From Cyanophora paradoxa CCMP329 (Eukaryota > Plantae > Glaucophyta): 64,000 nt of DNA. Where the stretch lies: positions 62,001 to 126,000 of the forward strand of contig QPMI01000227.1 of NCBI GenBank assembly GCA_004431415.1, read 5' to 3'. Position numbers and translations under genes: made by a program. The notes below the pieces were generated by a model. It was given only the letters and a program-made list of their open reading frames with translations. It ran no database searches and had not been told where the DNA came from. Below are positions 53,205 through 64,000 of the stretch, piece by piece (position 1 is the first letter of the stretch; every line of letters begins with the position of its first letter).

Positions 53205-55707
53205 ATGGAGTCGTTCTCGGGGCTGGTTGAGGAGCGCGTGGCGGCTGAGGTCCGTCCCCTGCCGACTCTCCCGTTTAGCAGCCGCGTGCTAACGGCGTCG
53301 ACGCCTCGCAGCTCCTCCGGCTCGGCTTCAGCACGCACGAGCTTGTTGTATCCGGAGTTAGCGCCGGTCTGCCGAATGCCGGCAGGGCCGTCCCTGTCTG
53401 TGATCCGGAGAACGTGATGCGGCTGATGCGCGGAGAGAACTTCATCGTGCAGCTAGCGGACTCGCGCAAGCGCGAGCAGCTTGAGATGAATGTAGTTCAA
53501 GTGGTTAAGGACACAGCGACGGGCGAGCGCAAGCGGCACGTCATCTCGGGCGTGCACGAGGTGTTGCAGGTGGCTGGAGTCATCGGGGACCTTGACCTCT
53601 GCGCCGAGTACGGCATACCGCCGCACATCGTCGAGACCCTGGACTCCACGTACCAGCTCGCTATAGCTGCTGGACTCGAAGCGTTAGCGCATGCCGGCAT
53701 CGAGCTCGACACGCACCACGTGCCCACAGAGCACGGCAACCCACATCTGAAGCATCCCAAGCGGCGGTGGGGCCCACTTCCAGCGGCTCTTCAGGCCTCG
53801 ACCGGTGTGATTTTCGCGTCATCCTTCCCAGCTCTGGATTCGATGGTGGAAGAGGTCTCGCGCTTCGTCGCTCACCGCCTGACGGAGTCGTCGAGGAAAG
53901 GCATCATTGAACGCTTGTCTGCATATTCGAAAACGCGCGCTGGATCCGAGCAACCGTCCGATGCGACGGCGCAGCTCGAGTCGTACTTGCAGTCTCTGAC
54001 GGTCGAGCCATCTGGGGATGAAGCGTCCATGCCCGGCTCTTACTCTTTCAACAGAAAGCTTCTTTTCCAGGTTCGCATAATTTGTTTTTCTCTTGGATTC
54101 TCTGTCCGAGAGCTTACGCCTCTTGCAGATCCTGGTCATGGCAAATGCACAGTTAGCAGAGCTGATTCATGCTCGCGGGTAGCCTTTTTGGTTCTTGTTC
54201 GGATCGTTCAAGCGCTGACATTAGGTACACGTGCAGGCCAAACACGCAGATCAATGCTGCCTGTGCATCGACTGCTCAGGCCATTGCTTTGGCTGAAGGT
54301 GAAGTGGGCCAGAGGGCTTGTCGTGTTCTCGTTGAATTTTTATATTCTTGTTCCAGATTGGATTCGTGTTGGACGGTGCGAGCGGGTTGTCGTAGTTTCC
54401 GGCGACAACGCAACATCGGACAACCTTCTCCGCTACATAGGGACTGGTGCTGCGCTGATTGCGCATATGACTGCACGCACTTCTCCTCACGAAGTGGTTC
54501 CAGGCTTCATGGCCCTTGGAGCTGCCTGCACACAGGCAGAAGTGGAGGCAGCCGCCCTTCCCTTCGATGCGCGGCGGTCGGGCATGGTCCTTGGAGCCGG
54601 TGCAGTTGGTCTCGTCATCGAAAGCGAAGTTGCAGCGCTACGGCGCGGCGCTCGGCCACTGTGCCGGCTGCTGGGAAGCCACATCGCCAATTCAGCATTT
54701 CATGCTTCACTTCTCGACGCAAAACACATCAGGTGCAACTGGACTCCCTTGCGTTACCTTGACTCCTGCTGACCGAGTTTTCAGCTCAGAACTTGACGTG
54801 TTCTTGACACGCATGGAACGCCGTCACGGCATTTCGCGATCCGACATCGCAGACAGGTGAATATATGATCTTCTCCTTTTTTTGCAGCATCCTTACGCAT
54901 TGTCACAGCTGCATATACATGAGCCATGAAACTTTTACATGCGCACGAGGTGGATGCGCCAAGGTGGAGATTGATGCTCTCCGCTCTGCCTTTCTGCGGT
55001 GTCCTGGTGGTATCTCCCGGATTACTATTGCCAACACCAAGGGCTTCACAGCGCACCCGATGGGTGTTGGGATTGAAGGTTGGCGCACCTCTGTCTTTGT
55101 CGGCGTACCATCTTGTTTACAAAGCTGCAGATGCTGTTGCGGTCGAGTGCTTGCATCACAAACTTGTACCTCCCATCGCAAATTTTAAGCAATCGTAAGA
55201 ACGGTTTCCTTCTCATGGGCTTCGGGGTTGAACTTGATCTCGATCTCAGTGATCCTTGTCTTGGGGGAGACCTTAATCTTTCGCATGGAGGCCACCTGGA
55301 TGCACGCTTCTGCTTGCGGTTTGCAGCTGGTGTGTAGATTCCCTTCCTTCCGTTTTCGGGCTCATGCAACCTCCTTCAATGATCAATAACCGCCAGGATT
55401 TGGGTCTCACTTCGTATATCTTCTCTACGCGTCGTACTCTTCACCGTCGCCTTCTGCTCTTCGGGCCCTGGCCGTAAGCATGACTCATTCTCGTGGATGT
55501 AATTTTCTCAGTTTCTCGCAGATGGAATCGACTGCTCCCCAAGGGGCAGCTGCCCTCGCTGCTGAGCCCGACTCAGAGCCAGAGCACAAGAAGCACGTGC
55601 GACATCACCACAAGCCTCACCACTACGATTCACATCATTTCCATGAATCACATCTTAACCTTCAACCAAAAAGCTTCATTTCAACTCCAGGCCTGGCCCA
55701 GCCTTAG
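53205..55707 (+). CDS. Stand-alone beta-ketoacyl synthase, similar to prokaryotic PKS/FAS KS domains, spliced
   Basis: [12 protein letters not shown] (Cys), SHET (His), [11 protein letters not shown] (His), [23 protein letters not shown]. Confidence 0.85.
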
Positions 55708-56500
55708 CTCCTCAACGTTGGTGTTTTCATTTAAGCTGCTCTTTACACTGTAGCTGTATCTCACCAGCAACATGGCTGTCGTTTCTGGAAAAGACAAGGT
55801 CGCAGCCATAGAAAAGCTCTGCTACAACAGAAATGCATGCATTCGACGTGCCACGAGATGTCAGCTGGCTGTTTCAATTCTTTGATCATGTAAATCTACT
55901 GCGGGCTGAGTAGGCAAATCGCCATTTAAACAGCTGCCGCAGTGCACCAAGTCCGAGATCGCTGAGAGAGTCGAAATCGAAAATATGAATAATATTCTCT
56001 ACTTCCGAGTTCAATTCTTTGATCATATAATCTTGTCAGCATGCGCAGATCGACGCTCGCGATCGCGATCGAGCTCTACAGAACGATACTATGATAACTA
56101 AGTACCTGTGATCATGATCATCATGGCATGATCATGATCATGAGCGTGTGCCCTCTGAACGCTCTAGATCTAGCCGCCTGAGCTATATATACATATATAG
56201 AGAACGAGTTTTTGTGCTGCATCAAATCTATCAAGTTATTAGCCAGTAGAACGTTTCAAACTGAACGGAGTTTGCGTCACGCCCCGCCCATTGTTAACTT
56301 CTTCCGCCAATGAAATTAGCCCAGCGCAAACTTGAGCTCGAACTTGGCCTCGTACACAGTGGCGTACACACGCGGCCACAACGGTCACAGTAACGGTCAG
56401 CAGGCCGGCTTGCTAGTCAGCTTCCCTCGGCTAGGCCGGACTAGCTAGCTTCCCGCCATCGCGCACGCCCGAGCGCGAGCATTCCTGCACGCCGCCGTGC

Positions 56501-58405
56501 ATGAAGCAGTCAAAGCGAAAGGAACCCAGCCTCTGGGATGACGGCTTCGACGAGGCCCGACGTCGGCACCGCTGGCACGGCAAGCGACCCGACAGCAGCA
56601 GCTCGTGGGCCGGCAAGGGCAACATGAAGCGTGTCAACAAGATCACTCAGCAGGCGCGCAAGGCGAAGGAGCCCAAGCTCCCTGACCTCGACATCCTCAA
56701 GGGCGAGCACCCCGCGGCAACGGTCCGCTGCCTGGACACCAGCGGCCGCGCCTACCACGTTCGCCTTGGCGACTTCGTCATCTGTTCAGTTAGCTCAGAC
56801 ACCCAGCTGTGTCCAGAACTCAGCGTCGTTCGCCCGAAGCCCTTCCATTTCCCGCGCCCAGGTGAAACGATTTTGGCGCGAGTCGAGGCGAGTTCCCAAC
56901 ACAGACGAAGGCGAAGCGCGGCGACTTCAACTACTCCGTCAACGGCGTCATCCTTCGGCGCTTCGTGCGCCCGGAGGACTCCGATGTGAAGGACTGCGGG
57001 CTCGGCAGCGTGATCATCAAGGCAGACGGGAGCAGGCAGCCGTGGCCATCGCAAACCACCTCATCTACTACTCGAACGTGACGGTCCGCCCGCCGCGCCC
57101 GCGCCCCGTTCCAGCGTCCGATGCCCGTGCGCGCAGGTTCACGCACCCGCGAAGGTGGTGGCCGCGGACGAGTACAAAGCCCTCAACACGCCGATCCCCA
57201 CATCTACGTCTGTAAGCAAATCATGACGTTCCCGGGCGACGGCTCCTTCCAGTTCGACGTCGCCCTCGCCTTCAACGCGAGGCTCAAGCGAGTGGCGAAG
57301 AAGAAGATGGCGTGCTTCCTCCGGCCGCTGTCGAGGCCGGAGGAGCGCGTGGAGGCGATTGGCTACCTTCAGGACGCCGCGCGAACGCCCTCAAGCGCCG
57401 GAAGACCGGACGCAGCTTGTCAACGTCAAGATCCCGGTGGCCGGGCCGGCAATGTTGGTCTGCGGCTCTTATGACTCGTTCGAAGTTCTTTTTCCTATCC
57501 TCTAACGGTGCGCATCGCAGGAGAACATCGTGGCGCAGGTCGCGCACGTCGCCACGCCCATCGACCCGAAGACGGGCCAGCCGATCCGGTTGACAAGCTG
57601 CCGGCGGCGAATCGCTTCGTTATCGAGCTTCCGGACCGCGAGACCGCTGCTGGTGGAAGCCGCTTCCTTTTTCCCGCTCGCTGTTCTTTTTCCGACCTCT
57701 TTGCAGCTGTTCTCGGTCCCTCCGGCGTGGCGCAAGCGTCCAAGCGCGTCTGCAAGCGGGACGCGGACGGGAAGGCGATCCGGAAGCACAGCGAGATGCA
57801 GACGTCACCGTCGAGAAGGCGTACGGCGGCTTAATCGTGCCGCGCCACACGGGCTCCCATGACGTCGTCCAGTTCGACGAGCGTGCGCCCGGCCGCCCTC
57901 GCCGCGCCGCTCGCTTACGAAGCTCTGCTCCTTGGGCGCGGCAGGTCCCGGTCGGATCGTGGCCACGAAGCGCTCGGGCAGGAAAGGTGGGCACGTCACG
58001 CTCGAGCTTCCGAGCTACGAGTACGGCCCGACGGCGAGCGCATCGCCAGCCTCGCGGGGCCCTCGCGGCTGTCCCGTGAAGCGCCCGCGCCGGTGCCGCG
58101 CCGGCGCCAACACCGTCGCCAAGGCGCCGCCTGTCCCGAAGCAGCCCCTTCAGAACCTGCCGCCGCCGCCCTGCCGGCCCCGCCGCCGCCCTGCCGGCCC
58201 CCGCCGTCGCCGCCCCGCGGCCCCGCCGCCGCCGCCCTGCCGGCCGCCGCCGCCGCCGCCCGCCGCCCGCCCCGCCGGTCGCCGCCCTGTCGGCCCTGCT
58301 GCTGCTGCCCACCGGCCGCTGCCGCCCTACCTGCCCCCGCCGCATCCGCCTCGGTCCCCAAGTGCGCCCCTCCCCTCGCCCCCGCTCGGCTACTTGCTCG
58401 CCTAA
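56501..58405 (+). CDS. BAH-domain protein with several frameshifts (degenerate or sequence errors)
   Basis: YHVRLGDFVIC, ILARVE, VILRRFVRPEDS, NHLIYYSN, AKVVAADEYK and IYVCKQ follow BAH strand order; Pro-rich tail; end approximate. Confidence 0.65.
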
Positions 58406-58582
58406 TCCTGCAGCAGGAAGGATCGCGCGGCACAGCTCGCGGCCGCGGTGGCGGCGCGCAAGAGGGCAAAGTCGTGAAGCTGCTACTGAGAATCGCACTA
58501 TCTAGGTTACAAGGTGCGCTATGTCTGGTCCAAATCCATTTCGTCTATTTCCCCTCCGCTAGATCGTCTGCTAGAACCTCTG

Positions 58583-61500
58583 CTAGGGCCTATCATCGAA
58601 ATCGAGCATGTTGGCGCCCTCATCCTCCGCCTCCATCTCCTCCTCCGCCTCCTCCTCTGCCTCGGCGTCGTACTCGGCGGTCTCCTCCTCCTCCTCCTCC
58701 TCGTCCCGCTCTCCTCGGGCACTCGTCCTCCGGCACCGGATCCCCTCCTGCAGCTCAATATCCTCGTCGATCTCCTCCTCGTCCGCAGGCAGGGCACCGC
58801 TGCCACCTCCTCGCCCCCGGCGGCGCCGCCGCCGCCCCTTCGCCTGCATAGCCGCTGACCGGTGGGGACGGGCCGCAGGTCGGGGGATGAAGGGCCCATC
58901 TGGCCAGGCCTTGGCGGCGACGGGCGCGTCGTACTCGGCGTGGCAGCGTCCTTCCCGCCGGCGCTCGCCTCCGTCATGTTCCGCATCCACAGCGCCAGGC
59001 GCCGCCGCTGGTGCGTCATGATCTGCTTGAGCATGTCGAGGTCCTTGTTCCACCGCCACCGAGAGACGTGACGGTGTGTCGCAGGCGCCGAAGGAGGCCC
59101 ATGTAGGACTCGATGACCTCGCAGCTCCAACGGCCGGGCGCGTTCGTGTTGTCGACGCGCGCCAGAACGCGAGGTGCGCAAGCGTCGAGTGCATGTAGCG
59201 TGTGAAGATCTTCCATAACGGGAAGTGTGTCTCCATCAGGCCCTGGAGCTCGGCGACGGCCTCGATAACTTGCTGCCGCGCCTCCTCGTCGGGCTTCATG
59301 TTCCGCTCGTACTGGTAGATGATCTGGCGGAGCTGCCAAATCTCGTGCATGCCCCTCGTCTTCTCGCTCCAGCTCTCCTTACTGTCGCCGAAGCAGATGC
59401 TGAGAGGGTGTCGGGCGCCTCGGGGTCCTCCAGGATCTTCTTGGCGGTGTTGGCGGAGATCTTCTGGAAGAACTTGTAGGTGGCCCCGTTCTCGGTCTTC
59501 TCGAACTTGATGTTCCGCGCGTATTTATCGCGAAGATGACGCTGCAGGTCTTCGATGCGCTTCTGCTGGTCCTCGGAGGCACCACAGGCGAGGGCGAGGA
59601 AGAAGTAGACGAAGAACCCGGCCACCCAGCTCTTGATGCCGTGCAGGGCGTCGTCGAGCCGGACCTGAGGTGCGCGTTGGCGTCCGCTGAGGCGAGGTGT
59701 CGCGGGCTTCTCACCTCGACGGCAGCGACGGGCAGCATGCTGTTCGGGAGCGGCTGCAGGAGGGCGTTGGCGTCGTGCTCGGGGTGCGGATTCTCTGTTC
59801 GCTGGCTGGAGGGAGGCCGTCCCGATCCCGCGGCCCTGCTGCGCGCACGACTTCGACCGCCGAGCACTCGGACCTGCAGTAACGTGAGCCCCATGCCGAA
59901 TCTCAGCGCGTGTGACTCGGCGAACTGACCCGCGTCGGTGGACAGAATCGCAGTGCGGGCACAGGTCGAAGCCGAGGAGGACGCGGAGGAACTTGTAGTC
60001 GCCCGTCACCAAGAATTCGACCTCGACGGCTTGTCGTGCTCGTACCCGGGGATCAGGGTGAGCGGGTTCTCGTTCAGGTACTCGACCATGTCGGCGAGGG
60101 GCTTGATGCGTGGGCGCAGGTTCTCCTCGCTGTCGCTACCGCCGAAGAGCATTAGGGGCAGGAGGGCGTAGCAGCTCTGAACGCCCTTCAGCGGGTGGTA
60201 CGCCTGCGTCCCGTCCTCCTCGATGACGTAGTAGCCGTCGACGATTGCCACGATGCAGGTCATGCCGTCGGTCGTGGAGACGCTCTTCCCGCGGAACGCG
60301 ATCGTCCCGTCGCCCGCCAGGCGGACTCGAGGTCTGATCTTCTTCCCCCTGTGCTTGTGCAGCGGGACGAAAGCGCTGATGAGGGCCGACAGGGCGGGCG
60401 TCGGCGTGACAGCTCTGCGGGCGGCGGCGCTGCCGCCTCTCCGCCCGCCGCCGGCGCTGCCGCCTCTCCGCCCGCCGCCGGCGCTGCGCTCGACGGAGGC
60501 ACAAAGAGCTCGAGCATGACGCCCGGCTTGCCCTTGTTCTCCTCGTCGCCGACGCCCGCCGCTGTTTCGACGATCTGCACGATCTGCACCGCTCGGTGAG
60601 CCTCGTCCCTCACCCCGCCCGCGCGCGCGCGCCGCGCCTTCTCGAGGTCATCGTTGACCTTGCCCGTAGCTTCGTGATGCAGTGCTTCGACGGGAGGAAG
60701 GCTCGCAGCCCCACGAAGTGCTTCTTCAGGGCCTTCTTGAGGAGCTTCGTGAACTCAAAGTACGTCGCCTGCCCGGGTCGGTTTAGAACGGGATGGGGGG
60801 TTAAAACATTCGAGAAAGGGCGCACGTCCGAGATGCAGTGGCGGTCCTTCCACTCTAGAATCTCGCAGTCGGGGAAGGTGTCCCGCAGCTTCCTGCAGGC
60901 GATGCTCATCGCCTTCTTCACTTGCAGCTGACCCGATTTGCTCGTTTCCAGGGCTCGTTGGGCCTGCGGACGGTGGTTCAGAAAGGTGCTCTTCTCCAAC
61001 GATTTTGTAGCCTATTAAAGTACGATTCTCGGTAGCTCTTTTTATGTATAATAACGCGCACTGCGTGTGGCCGATGATGCTCACGAGGCGGCGTGCCTCC
61101 GCCTCCAGCGCCTCCCTCCTCTTCTGATAGGCGCCCTCCTCCTCTCCTTTGTTCCTGGGGCGCCCTGGATAAGCATGCATATGCCTGCGCGCGCGCCGCC
61201 CCGCCTTGTACCTCGCGAAGTTCTTTTTAAACATGGGGAGGCGGATCTGGATGTCCGGACTCGCAGCGTTTAGAATCGTCGAGAGCAGCATGCGGAGGAA
61301 CCGCGTGCGCCGCTGCCTGGACGTATCCGAGCATCCCTTCCCAGGGACCTGCCTAGCTATGCGCGAGATGGTCGCTGCACGCTGTGCCGAAGTCCGCGGG
61401 ACCTTGGCGCGCTTCGACTGGTGCTCCTCCCTAAGCTTCTTGTTCTCCGCCTCAAGCACTGCGATGCGCTCGTCGCGCGCTTTGAGCGTCGCCTTGCGGA

Positions 61501-62081
61501 CGATCCGCTCCTCAGGCGGCACATCTTCCTTGCCGCGAGCGCGTTTCGGGGCGGTGCCGGGGCCGGGGGCCGGCCGCGGCGCCGGGCTCGGCGCCTCATT
61601 AAGAACTGCATTCGTCTGCTCGCGGCCGGGCAGAGAGCATACACTCGTAAGCGCGGGCAAGTCAAGTCATGACATCGAATTTGAATGAGCGGCATACCAC
61701 GTCGGCGCCGAACGCGCGACGACCGCGCTGCTGCTGCTGCTCTGGGCTAATCTGAGGCGATTGCGGGCTCGCTGGAGCCGATGGCGACCCGGGTGGCGAA
61801 GCTGGAGGGCTCTGCAGGATGCACTGGAGGAACACAGCCACTGCGGTGGCCTCTTGAAGCGCCGCCGTGCAAGCTAAGCTATGCGGATACAATGGAGACG
61901 CAATGCCGCGCGCCTCCAGTTCCAGGTGGGCGTTTCGGCTGTGGGTGAGCACTGCGATGATCCGCATAAGCGCCTGGTACGCGACCGACGCGTCCGCCAT
62001 CTCTAAAACGACTGCTGCGGGCGCTGGAAACGTTTGGGGCGCGGGCTGGGCCGCGGGACGGGGCGCGATGGGTCGCTGCAT
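58583..62081 (-). mobile_element. RAG1/Transib/Chapaev-like DDE transposase gene with introns and frameshifts
   Basis: VRLAGDGT (D1, ~60310), VTGDYKFLRVLLGFDLCPHC (D2 plus C2, ~59950-60005), DDALH (~59645), TRYMHSTLAH (~59190), GRWSCEVIESYMGLLRRLR (E, ~59110), acidic tail. Confidence 0.8.
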
Positions 62082-62483
62082 CGCGCGGGCGGGTTCAAAA
62101 CTCGGAAAAAAAGATCGCGTGTACCTCCCCTGCCATCTGCGGAAGCGGCAGCTCCGAGCGCCGCGAGCAAGCATACACATCCGCGACAGTTAGGCGCCGA
62201 AGAGCAGCAGGCGAGCCCAGCATGCGCGATAATGCGCAATTGCGATGCATAGCTACCTTAGGCGAAGCGGCTGGTCCACCCGCGCGGTCCTTGCCGGCCG
62301 CGATGCTCGCTCGTCGATATGGGTATGACGCGCTAAGCAAGGGGAGCATGCCCAGACTGGGTACGCAAACTGCTGAACGTCCAACTCCAGCTGAACGCCC
62401 TGCAGCTGGTGGGCCTGAAGCAGCCTCAAGCGTTAGCTATGTCGCATCGACAGTGTAGCTATGTTAGCTGTGGAGCGAAGCAT

Positions 62484-63215
62484 ATGCCCGCTGACTACGT
62501 GTCCGAGGAGGAGGACCAGGAGGAGACCATCAACGCGCCGTGCAATCGCCCAATGACTTCGTCTGTCATCGAGATCAACAGCAGCGACTCGGAGAGCGAT
62601 GGACCAGCGGCAGCGCGCCGAGCGCAGGGCGCGCATGAAGGCGGACGAGGAGCGCGCGCTCGAGGAGGAGGATGAGATCAGGCGGCGCCACCAGGCAGCT
62701 TTGGAGGTCAACCTCGCAATAGAGCGCGACTCGGTGAGGCCATACAAGCTGGCCGAGCTCAAGCAGTTGCTGGAGTACGCGCGCGCGTGGATGCGCGAGC
62801 ACGAGCAGCTGTACGAGCAGTTCGAGGTCGCGCTGGCGCACAACAACCTCCTCGAGGCCATTAACCTGCGGTCGGAGATCCGCAAGCACCGCAGCACGGC
62901 GCGCTTCTGCGGGCAGGACCCCTCGGGCTCTACGAGGAGGCGGCCTTCAAGCCTCTCTATGACAACGTGACGGCCTTGCAGCGGCGGGCGGGGCAGATGG
63001 AGCATTTCGGCGACAATCTCTTCAAGTGCGCGGAGCACTTCCAGCGGGTGCGCATCCGGCAGCAGCAGGCGGCGGCGGCGGCGGCGGCGGAGGCGGCGGA
63101 GGCGGCGGCGGAGGCGGACGGGGCTGCTGCTGCTGCTCGGTGCAAGCGCCGCCGCCTGCGTCGCGGCGACGGCGTGCTCGTCTCGCGGCCGGACGATGCC
63201 GACGACGAAGCGTAG
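62484..63215 (+). CDS. Intronless helical/coiled-coil protein with frameshifts, divergent from the transposase
   Basis: MPADYVSEEE..VIEINSSDSESD, E/R/A-rich helices and KRRRLRR spread over three frames. Confidence 0.5.
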
Positions 63216-63480: not shown

Positions 63481-64000
63481 TCGCCGCCCTGCCGGCGACG
63501 GCGTCCTCGTCTCGCGGCCGGACGATGTCTGCAGCTAGAGTCACCAGCTGCAGTCTGCACCTGGCTTGAATACGACAGATTTACTAGTTATTCTGCTATC
63601 GTGCGCGCACCGTGGCACCGTGGCACCGTGGCACTCAGTGACTACCGAGAGTGGCGGGCGGGCTGGCGGGGCGGGCTGACAGGGCGGGGCGCCTGGCGGG
63701 ACAGTCGGGGGCCTCCGGGACACTCTGGCAGTCCGGGGGCCTCGGGAGCCTATTTTCGCGCCATACAAGGCCTCCCCGACCCTGCAGCTGCATAGGAGGC
63801 CTTATATAGTGCTTTAAAAAGGTTCTCTAAGCTTTTTTCGATGTCTCCCAGCTCCTGGGGCGATGGGCCCAATTTGGAAGGGCCAAAAGTCAGCAGAAGA
63901 CTAGCTGTAACGTAGTGTATAGGCGTATGATGAGTCATATGGTATGACGGGTTAAATGGCCCATCGCGGGGCTTTGTGCAGGGCACTAAATAACGCCGTG

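Follow-up and report, generated by a model that had tools for sequence, protein, structure and literature searches.

A probable young, multi-copy cut-and-paste transposase gene with a RAG1-like core in the glaucophyte Cyanophora paradoxa

Described RAG1-type transposases and the Cyanophora locus

The hallmark of the CMCT clade of transposases (CACTA/Mirage/Chapaev/Transib/RAG1) is the combination of three acids, D, D and E, with two cysteines and three histidines (PMC12730594). The acids, the CxxC pair, the ALH histidine and the HxxxxH pair are found also in CACTA/EnSpm, Mirage, Chapaev, Plavaka, ESTA and Lanisha (Kojima 2025, PMC12730594), and ESTA, a lineage outside Transib, likewise matches RAG1 in HHpred (PMC12730594). 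A RAG-like element has already been published from a pelagophyte, and Transib from bacteria, fungi and plants (PMC9435367). The pelagophyte element, AanRAGL of Aureococcus anophagefferens, was found by sequence similarity and has a RAG2-like gene, asymmetric terminal inverted repeats (TIRs) and target site duplications (TSDs) of 5 bp (Tao et al. 2022, PMC9435367).

The stretch of DNA analysed here (the window) comprises 64,000 nt of Cyanophora paradoxa CCMP329, positions 62,001-126,000 of the forward strand of contig QPMI01000227.1 in assembly GCA_004431415.1. Window positions 58522-62000 probably hold, on the minus strand, one member of a young, multi-copy family of cut-and-paste transposase genes with a RAG1-like core. 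It resembles mouse RAG1 and amphioxus BbRAG1L (ProtoRAG, PDB 6B40) in how D, D, CxxC, ALH, HxxxxH and the Glu-Ser pair are ordered and spaced, and it has the clade-wide catalytic and zinc residues in common with the Transib transposase HzTransib (PDB 6PQN). Like AanRAGL, the family is of RAG1 type, occurs in a unicellular alga outside animals and is young and apparently mobile. In contrast, the RAG2-like gene, the asymmetric TIRs, the 5-bp TSDs and the detectability at sequence level are features of AanRAGL of which none was seen for the Cyanophora family. The relevance to the origin of the V(D)J recombinase that had been suggested for this locus is modest, as a pelagophyte was already known to carry RAG-like elements, and bacteria, fungi and plants to carry Transib, and the Cyanophora family alone leaves that picture unchanged. 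The family is new but the kind of transposase is known, and it does not bear directly on how V(D)J recombination arose. Its interest lies in that a glaucophyte family joins the transposase clade that includes RAG1, revealed only by motifs, language-model features and fold, and that, given a phylogeny and element ends, it could help to root the relationships of CACTA-type, Transib and RAG1-like transposases.

Gene extent, frame breaks and candidate active-site residues

Tblastn and exact-block mapping of the paralog models P0004 and P0006 placed the whole gene of this copy at 58522..62000 on the minus strand, from an ATG at 62000 to a stop after 58522. The minus-strand gene that the initial annotation put at 58583-62081 is thus there, with a 3' end slightly farther out than it had been drawn, and the database model of the locus itself is P0001 (tig00000944_g5968; 100% match). 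The catalytic core, a predicted RNase-H-like DDE domain with a ZnC2/ZnH2 insertion, was delimited at 58990..60419 on the minus strand by GC3 frame plot, block map and language-model matches to RAG1 families, and it would be a single open frame but for one-base deletions of the assembly and, perhaps, two short introns (59870-59925 and 59659-59708, minus strand), candidates predicted by gene models only. An acidic, low-complexity C-terminal tail (58522..58870, minus strand) was recognized from the paralog alignment and the block map. Directly before the core lies an Ala/Pro/Gly linker made of a 27-nt tandem repeat in 2.3 copies (60425..60487); the copy number of the repeat varies among the paralogs, and DNA contigs break at it.

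The introns that had been expected to interrupt the gene were found mainly in its 5' part, whereas few or none are needed in the core. Canonical sense introns on the minus strand lie at 61616-61697, 61154..61210 (57 nt, GT..AG, removed in RNA contigs), about 60964-61069 and 60769-60825. The intron at 61154..61210 is in frame, and its retention would add 19 residues. Among these is GRPR, the motif of the nonamer-binding domain, which occurs only within this intron, is removed with it in RNA and in the majority of models, and is likely a chance match in Arg/Pro/Gly-rich sequence.

All seven motifs claimed earlier were located on the minus strand in the order given, spread over three different frames: LAGDG starting at 60320, GDYKFL at 60003, CPHC at 59961, DALH at 59652, RYMHSTLAH at 59200 and GRWSCEVIES at 59135, followed by LLRRLR (59079-59096), which aligns to LFRRFR of RAG1. 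Instead of the about four single-base frameshifts proposed, at least ten were counted, as the window slips by one base against the paralog models at 60664, 60419, 60027, 59780, about 59402, 59162, 59052, 58942, 58589 and 58551, sites across which the paralog models are uninterrupted. Illumina-based DNA contigs from two runs had no substitutions relative to the window, but their single-base gaps numbered 11 over 58722-60454 and 5 over 60458-62601. They supplied a C missing behind 58550, 58588 and 58741; two of these coincide with frame breaks, and the C at 58550 and 58588 was restored in Illumina DNA and RNA contigs alike. Because the Illumina contigs lack substitutions and resupply bases at the breaks, the frame breaks are long-read homopolymer deletions and not mutations, and the apparent frameshifts of the window are assembly errors. 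In practice, intact genes in the public Cyanophora assembly are concealed by such deletions. The motifs can be joined in one reading frame in several copies, and all of them are united in one protein in four of the nine aligned models (P0004, P0006, P0010 and P0011).

In the numbering of P0004, the predicted first catalytic Asp is D418 in RLAGDG (60309..60311; this and the following features are on the minus strand), for which order and spacing suggest RAG1 D600 as the proposed counterpart. The predicted second Asp is D522 in TGDYKF (59998..60000), proposed as the equivalent of RAG1 D708, and CPHC (59950..59961) lies 13 residues past it with C535/C538 as a candidate C(2)C zinc pair. DALH (59641..59652) contains H606, and here the structural alignment to RAG1 begins, at RAG1 792-795. 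HSTLAH (59174..59191) provides the candidate H(4)H zinc pair H757/H762, which phmmer aligned to RAG1 H937 and H942, and the Glu-Ser pair E784/S785 (59106..59111; E784 codon 59109-59111) is aligned to RAG1 E962 and S963. The acids D, D and E of the CMCT clade (D418, D522, E784) are present in order, as is its set of two cysteines and three histidines (C535/C538, H606, H757/H762), so that the three acids and four zinc ligands of the initial annotation were all found in the order of the RAG1 core. To judge from the sequence, D418, D522 and E784 would have a catalytic role, forming the triad of an RNase-H-like domain, and the stretch from the second Asp to the Glu would contain a large helical insertion with a zinc site of C535/C538 and H757/H762 together with H606, which is conserved. 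If it works as RAG1, ProtoRAG and HzTransib do, a dimer of the transposase would assemble on the element ends, the DDE site would nick them and the element would be excised through a hairpin intermediate.

Sequence-level relatives, fold and position in the clade

At the sequence level the Cyanophora transposase family is an orphan. No relatives outside Cyanophora were found in an exhaustive phmmer search of 1.84 billion representatives with a 121-aa piece or in a word-indexed search of 5.8 billion proteins, and Pfam gave no match at E up to 10 for eight stop-to-stop pieces, for P0004, P0006 and P0011 or for the core alone. The models without a match at this threshold include RAG1_RNase_H, ZnC2, ZnH2 and pre-RNase_H (P0004, P0006, P0011 and core), and the CACTA families (Transposase_21, DUF4218 and others) did not match either. 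In contrast to RAG1, neither a RING nor another RAG1 N-terminal region was detected. Searches of the PDB with the full protein and three sub-regions gave no significant sequence match, only noise. With an 88-aa query, 11 of 12 matches were to RAG1, falling within RAG1 932-973 at H937/H942/E962/S963/LFRRFR, a likeness that at a non-significant best E of 0.22 would be weak on its own.

The likeness to RAG1 is clearer in other measures. The distances in P0004 are close to those in RAG1 (104 vs 108 residues between the two Asp, 262 vs 254 from the second Asp to the Glu and 22 vs 20 from the zinc His to the Glu). When language-model features were compared, RAG1 clusters came first for residues 385-800 (score 0.96, 188-191 of 256 features shared), and for residues 395-600 the RAG1_RNase_H/ZnC2 clusters scored 0.95, while a CMC cluster (Transposase_21) appeared only at rank 16 with 0.94. 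An AlphaFold model of residues 596-812, of medium confidence (pLDDT 60, pTM 0.60), was searched without prefilter against 48,161 PDB representatives, and the best match to the modelled insertion was BbRAG1L (6b40_E), with Z 9.8 over 154 aligned residues, although a Z of 9-10 is attainable by chance for helical models. RAG1 took ranks 2-4 and 6 (Z 7.5-8.9, and 8.7-8.9 for those among the first four) and HzTransib rank 10 (Z 6.7). From DALH onward the structural alignment is in register with the zinc histidines, and Foldseek agrees. The RAG1/Transib fold match that the initial annotation looked for was thereby obtained, with BbRAG1L, RAG1 and HzTransib on top, and this medium-confidence model suggests that the zinc-binding helical insertion has a fold of RAG1 type. 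Identity to RAG1 is about 20%, in the structure-based alignment only. For the catalytic half, motifs and language-model features point to an RNase-H fold; its single-sequence AlphaFold model (pLDDT about 30) was not usable for superposition on RAG1, and a shape search of the ESM Atlas with the whole-core model (pLDDT 44) returned noise.

Of the earlier placement in a RAG1L/Transib/Chapaev radiation, a real DDE transposase with a RAG1-like architecture remains, but membership in the RAG1/Transib clade is not established because every motif used is common to the whole CMCT clade, and the RAG1 Pfam models fail. The chance is a little short of even that the family belongs on the CMC side (EnSpm/CACTA, Chapaev, Mirage, ESTA or Lanisha-like) or is a deep CMCT branch of its own, its RAG1 look being owed to RAG1 as the solved and well-annotated representative. 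This would agree with diagnostic residues that are clade-wide and with the match of ESTA transposases to RAG1 in HHpred (PMC12730594), since ESTA, too, is RAG1-like only by profile or structure comparison. The score of the Transposase_21 cluster in the first-half language-model search points the same way. Moreover, the first zinc histidine is preceded by Met (MH..), in agreement with the CMC signature that Yuan and Wessler reportedly described in 2011, with a methionine ahead of this histidine. However, the CACTA models of Pfam did not match, and the language-model ranking favours RAG1 clusters over the CMC cluster.

It is possible, though doubtful, that the family is part of the Transib/RAG1L lineage in particular, where it might be a deep sister to RAG1L and Transib of subgroup I in which the long helical insertion was retained. 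RAG1-named clusters stood above the sole CMC cluster in both language-model searches, and BbRAG1L and RAG1 above HzTransib in the fold search (Z 9.8 and 8.9 vs 6.7). The insertion is of RAG1 length, as the distance from H606 to H757 is 151 residues compared to about 142 in RAG1 (DALH register), which would fit an alpha11-alpha12 region kept as in RAG1L and Transib of subgroup I (PMC9435367). The Glu-Ser pair and the spacing of H(4)H also match RAG1. On the other hand, RAG1 fragments were abundant among the Atlas matches and CMC transposase structures absent among the PDB matches, so that the comparisons may favour RAG1. In addition to the failing RAG1 Pfam models, no RSS-like heptamer pair lies within the window, and Cyanophora is absent from the available parts of the text and supplements of the survey by Tao et al., which covered RAG1 and Transib homologs in >680,000 genomes (PMC9435367).

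Copies, element ends and antisense RNA

Near-identical paralog gene models were found on at least 11 different contigs of Cyanophora paradoxa in EukProt, and copy number and identity suggest that this copy is mobile. Ends of CMCT elements would be recognized by termini 5'-CA..TG-3' with a TSD of 2-5 bp, and those of RAG1/RAG1L and Transib by a TSD of 5 bp and RSS-like TIRs that have a CAC heptamer at their start. Inverted-repeat and self-similarity searches found no TIR or TSD within the window, which has one copy. The inverted-repeat candidates were only GC-rich low-complexity pairs and one internal 17/18 match without extension, and the flanks had no informative repeat elsewhere in the window. 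Heptamers numbered 4 against 6.2 expected, and a lone CACAGTG at 56355 had no inverted partner in 62-64 kb. The right end of the element is probably beyond base 64000. A family of host genes that was domesticated or spread by segmental duplication and has lost its mobility would explain that no ends were found within the window, as well as the short introns of host type in the 5' part of the gene and the flat DNA depth over 57.4-62.6 kb, which implies that the neighbours were co-amplified. We consider it very improbable, as the copies, near-identical and on different contigs, in some cases differ in their 5' ends, and at 61595 the DNA contigs split up into flanks that vary.

RNA-like contigs from two studies cover 58400..61153, the core included, with 12 GT..AG introns on the plus strand, which is the strand opposite to the transposase ORF. 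As these contigs are antisense-spliced, they give no evidence of a full-length sense mRNA. The plus-strand transcript could itself be the real gene, and the minus ORF the mirror frame of a GC3-rich gene, given that all 12 introns are canonical and that Cyanophora transcripts with long ORFs on both strands number thousands (PMC6704402). This is hardly credible, however, because it is the minus frame whose GC3 is about 0.9, even within the plus-strand introns, whereas the plus mirror frame is GC-high at position 1; furthermore, the minus translation across three of those introns yields the RAG1-like fold and features, and all plus frames have stops beyond about 61030. The plus strand was rejected as the coding strand on codon-position GC, and the coding signature of the minus frame was strong throughout the transposase gene (GC3 0.88-1.0, GC2 0.3-0.5). 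The spliced antisense RNA that predominates over this young transposase gene offers an opportunity to test transposon control in an alga from which small RNAs have been reported.

The convergent neighbour gene (56501..58405, plus strand) is expressed and has three plus-strand introns in 57457-57944. Unlike in RAG1/RAG1L systems, no kelch RAG2-like partner was found at the locus, nor an RSS-like TIR. Pfam and PDB searches with pieces of the neighbour and its partial model P0008 gave neither a kelch nor a BAH domain, although a divergent domain could be missed in pieces broken by assembly errors. A BAH identity of this gene was unsupported by Pfam or PDB search, and Pfam gave nothing for the neighbour genes. 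In a further reading, which we regard as improbable, a glaucophyte would harbour a deep, hitherto unsampled branch adjoining RAG1L and Transib of subgroup I. The transposase would have kept a long RAG2-binding-type insertion and would move together with the convergent gene as its own partner in the RAG2 position, and spliced antisense RNA that starts in this partner and extends over the transposase gene would restrain it. If true, RAG-like transposons of two genes, with partners that differ, would have an ancient history in eukaryotes. On the other side of the transposase gene, a divergent upstream gene (62409..62970, plus strand) was covered by unspliced RNA contigs.

Gene structure and copies of the family

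The Cyanophora transposase is a new family, an orphan by sequence, of a known transposase clade (CMCT: CACTA, Mirage, Chapaev, Transib and RAG1 transposases), with an odd antisense transcript. The window DNA is GC-rich and eukaryotic and comes from Cyanophora paradoxa: both the gene model of this locus and those of its paralogs bear EukProt ids EP00741_Cyanophora_paradoxa. The gene, of which the window contains a single copy, runs on the minus strand from an ATG at 62000 to a stop after 58522, and the motifs named in the initial annotation were all found on this strand in the order claimed, across three frames. From about 61560 to 58560 a GC3 frame plot gave a single coding frame at any point (GC3 0.85-1.0, GC2 0.3-0.5), and coding periodicity dropped out only at short segments with canonical minus-strand GT..AG ends (61616-61697, 61154-61210, about 60964-61069 and 60769-60825). 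The segment at 61154-61210 is an in-frame sense intron of 57 nt that is spliced in RNA contigs. If retained, as in the paralog model P0005, it adds 19 residues including GRPR, which in RAG1 is the AT-hook-like motif of the domain that binds the nonamer; its occurrence here, in a sequence rich in Arg, Pro and Gly, is probably due to chance. In the core, the sense introns of the gene model at 59870-59925 and 59659-59708 (minus) nearly overlap antisense RNA introns at 59884-59945 and 59670-59725 (plus), and GC3 periodicity across 59970-59700 suggests coding in another frame rather than these model introns. Between CPHC and DALH the gene models disagree and the reading is unreliable.

A continuous piece of 121 aa (60009-60371) had only three matches among 1.84 billion proteins, all of them Cyanophora models, and word-indexed searches together with cluster look-ups brought the number of models, located on different contigs, to at least 11. 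Once aligned, the models are near identical wherever they agree, with a few substitutions in P0006. A perfect 27-nt tandem repeat at 60425-60487, at which short-read contigs break, encodes an Ala/Pro/Gly linker and varies by one unit in copy number (P0006 has one more). The 5' ends differ in some copies, and in both DNA runs the contigs split to the right of 61595 into at least two distinct continuations, which fits paralogs with a common core but other 5' parts (P0006, P0009, P0010). Every motif lies within one protein in the paralog models P0004, P0006, P0010 and P0011, the key residues of P0004 being D418, D522, C535, C538, H606, H757, H762 and E784; the models used for full-length analyses derive from the same error-prone assembly and disagree where it fails.

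Single-base deletions in the assembly

The frame breaks are assembly errors, not mutations. Illumina DNA contigs from two public runs aligned with 0 substitutions and 11 single-base gaps on 58722-60454, and with 0 substitutions and 5 single-base gaps on 60458-62601; in each gap listed the reads carry an additional C or G compared to the window. One extra C or G was present in Illumina DNA and RNA contigs at 57379, 57407, 57585, 57802, 58026, 58059, 58072, 58134, 58550, 58588 and 58741, and at 25 more places. The initial annotation had counted about four frameshifts, which is too low, as comparison with paralog models that stay open gave ten one-base slips (60664, 60419, 60027, 59780, about 59402, 59162, 59052, 58942, 58589 and 58551), the last two being the exact spots of a contig-inserted C (behind 58588 and 58550). 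PacBio RSII with read-mapping correction underlies the assembly (PMC6704402), which fits homopolymer deletions. The long-read assembly systematically lacks single bases at such places, and this breaks gene models in the window, and probably genome-wide.

Likeness to RAG1 and placement in the clade

Sequence methods say little on the likeness to RAG1. No Pfam family matched the pieces or the paralog models, the full-length protein found nothing among PDB sequences, and three sub-regions gave noise in the same search. With the 88 aa that surround the zinc histidines as query, 12 PDB matches were obtained, 11 of them RAG1 (best E 0.22); the alignment covers RAG1 932-973 and pairs H757/H762 with H937/H942, E784-S785 with E962-S963, and LLRRLR with LFRRFR. 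Language-model features are clearer: the nearest Atlas clusters to residues 385-800 were RAG1 fragments (0.96, 188-191 of 256 features in common), followed by DUF1280 clusters and by arthropod or cnidarian clusters with RAG1_RNase_H. Residues 395-600, a query that leaves out the zinc-histidine region used in the 88-aa search, fell nearest to RAG1_RNase_H/ZnC2 clusters at 0.95, with a CACTA-type cluster first at rank 16.

Modelled by AlphaFold from a single sequence, the whole core came out poorly (pLDDT 44); even so, RAG1 made up the top six Foldseek PDB matches and was, in a second alignment, again on top (Z about 9 over 148 residues, identity at most 24%, from DALH to the zinc histidines). 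Residues 596-812 were modelled separately (pLDDT 60, pTM 0.60) and aligned to 48,161 PDB representatives without a prefilter; the best match was BbRAGL (Z 9.8), RAG1 chains took ranks 2-4 (Z 8.7-8.9) and 6 (Z 7.5), and HzTransib came tenth (Z 6.7). For a modelled helical domain such Z values are by themselves modest, but with the listed RAG1/Transib representatives all in the top ten and in register with the motifs, the ranking is hard to put down to chance.

We place the Cyanophora transposase with confidence in the CMCT clade as a whole. The clade includes EnSpm/CACTA, Mirage, Chapaev, Transib, Plavaka, ESTA, Lanisha and RAG1, all of which share D, D, E together with two Cys and three His (Kojima 2025, PMC12730594). 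ESTA transposases make TA duplications, yet they also match RAG1 in HHpred (PMC12730594), and since no CMC structure is among the PDB matches, RAG1 as top match cannot decide between the two sides of the clade, Transib/RAG1 or CMC. The membership in a RAG1/Transib/Chapaev radiation proposed initially is right at that level, while the narrower RAG1/Transib label has RAG1-type top matches in its favour and is unproven, the residues being clade-wide.

An enzyme of RAG1 type outside animals is not new in kind, as earlier work (PMC9435367) describes RAG-like transposons with RAG1L and RAG2L in the pelagophyte Aureococcus, RAG1L in a chytrid, and Transib in bacteria, fungi and plants. The Cyanophora family appears to be unreported so far: Cyanophora is mentioned neither in PMC9435367 or its supplements nor beside Transib in a literature search.

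Antisense RNA, neighbouring genes and flanks

In RNA-like contigs from two studies, twelve segments are skipped between 58.5 and 61.0 kb. These are GT..AG introns on the plus strand, within an RNA-covered stretch at 58400-61153, with good donors (GTGAGC, GTGCGC or GTACGT) and lengths of 56-75 nt save one of 192 and one of 365, which is the usual size of introns in the genome (mean 86 bp; PMC6704402). They interrupt minus-strand codons with full codon bias, encoding helices of the RAG1-like model, and their lengths are mostly not divisible by three, so the spliced RNA cannot encode the transposase and is antisense to it. The only sense-strand splice among the joints listed is 61154-61210. One unstranded contig has both kinds of splice, and probably represents merged convergent transcripts. 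Small RNAs have been cited for Cyanophora, which is also known to have transcripts with long ORFs in both orientations (PMC6704402); at the transposase locus, a conserved protein is encoded opposite to the spliced RNA.

A convergent, expressed gene with introns lies on the plus strand from 56501 to about 58405, with a Pro-rich GC-repeat tail (58146-58350) and no kelch domain seen in Pfam and PDB searches. Towards the N-terminus it looks BAH-like (a GD-hydrophobic strand followed by RRFVRPED), an identity not confirmed by Pfam and PDB searches, which gave no match. A divergent upstream gene (62409-62970, plus), covered by unspliced RNA contigs, has an acidic Ser-rich stretch, a predicted helical part and no family match. 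DNA depth is flat over the transposase gene and both neighbours, and the three genes are thus probably amplified together.

No TIR pair for the transposase copy was found in the window. A canonical RSS heptamer, CACAGTG, occurs at 56355-56361, 146 bp upstream of the convergent gene's ATG, with CACAGTA 31 bp beyond; no inverted partner of it occurs at 62-64 kb, and heptamers in the window are at chance level. A long ORF at 53414-54772 (plus), whose translation resembles a beta-ketoacyl-synthase-type enzyme, lies in DNA less GC-rich than the transposon region and probably belongs to the host sequence to the left of the element. Between host-like DNA and the convergent gene, the GC-poor spacer (55.7-56.3 kb) holds an AT-rich palindromic GATCATGATCAT-type stretch at 56100-56145, possibly a subterminal region of the element.
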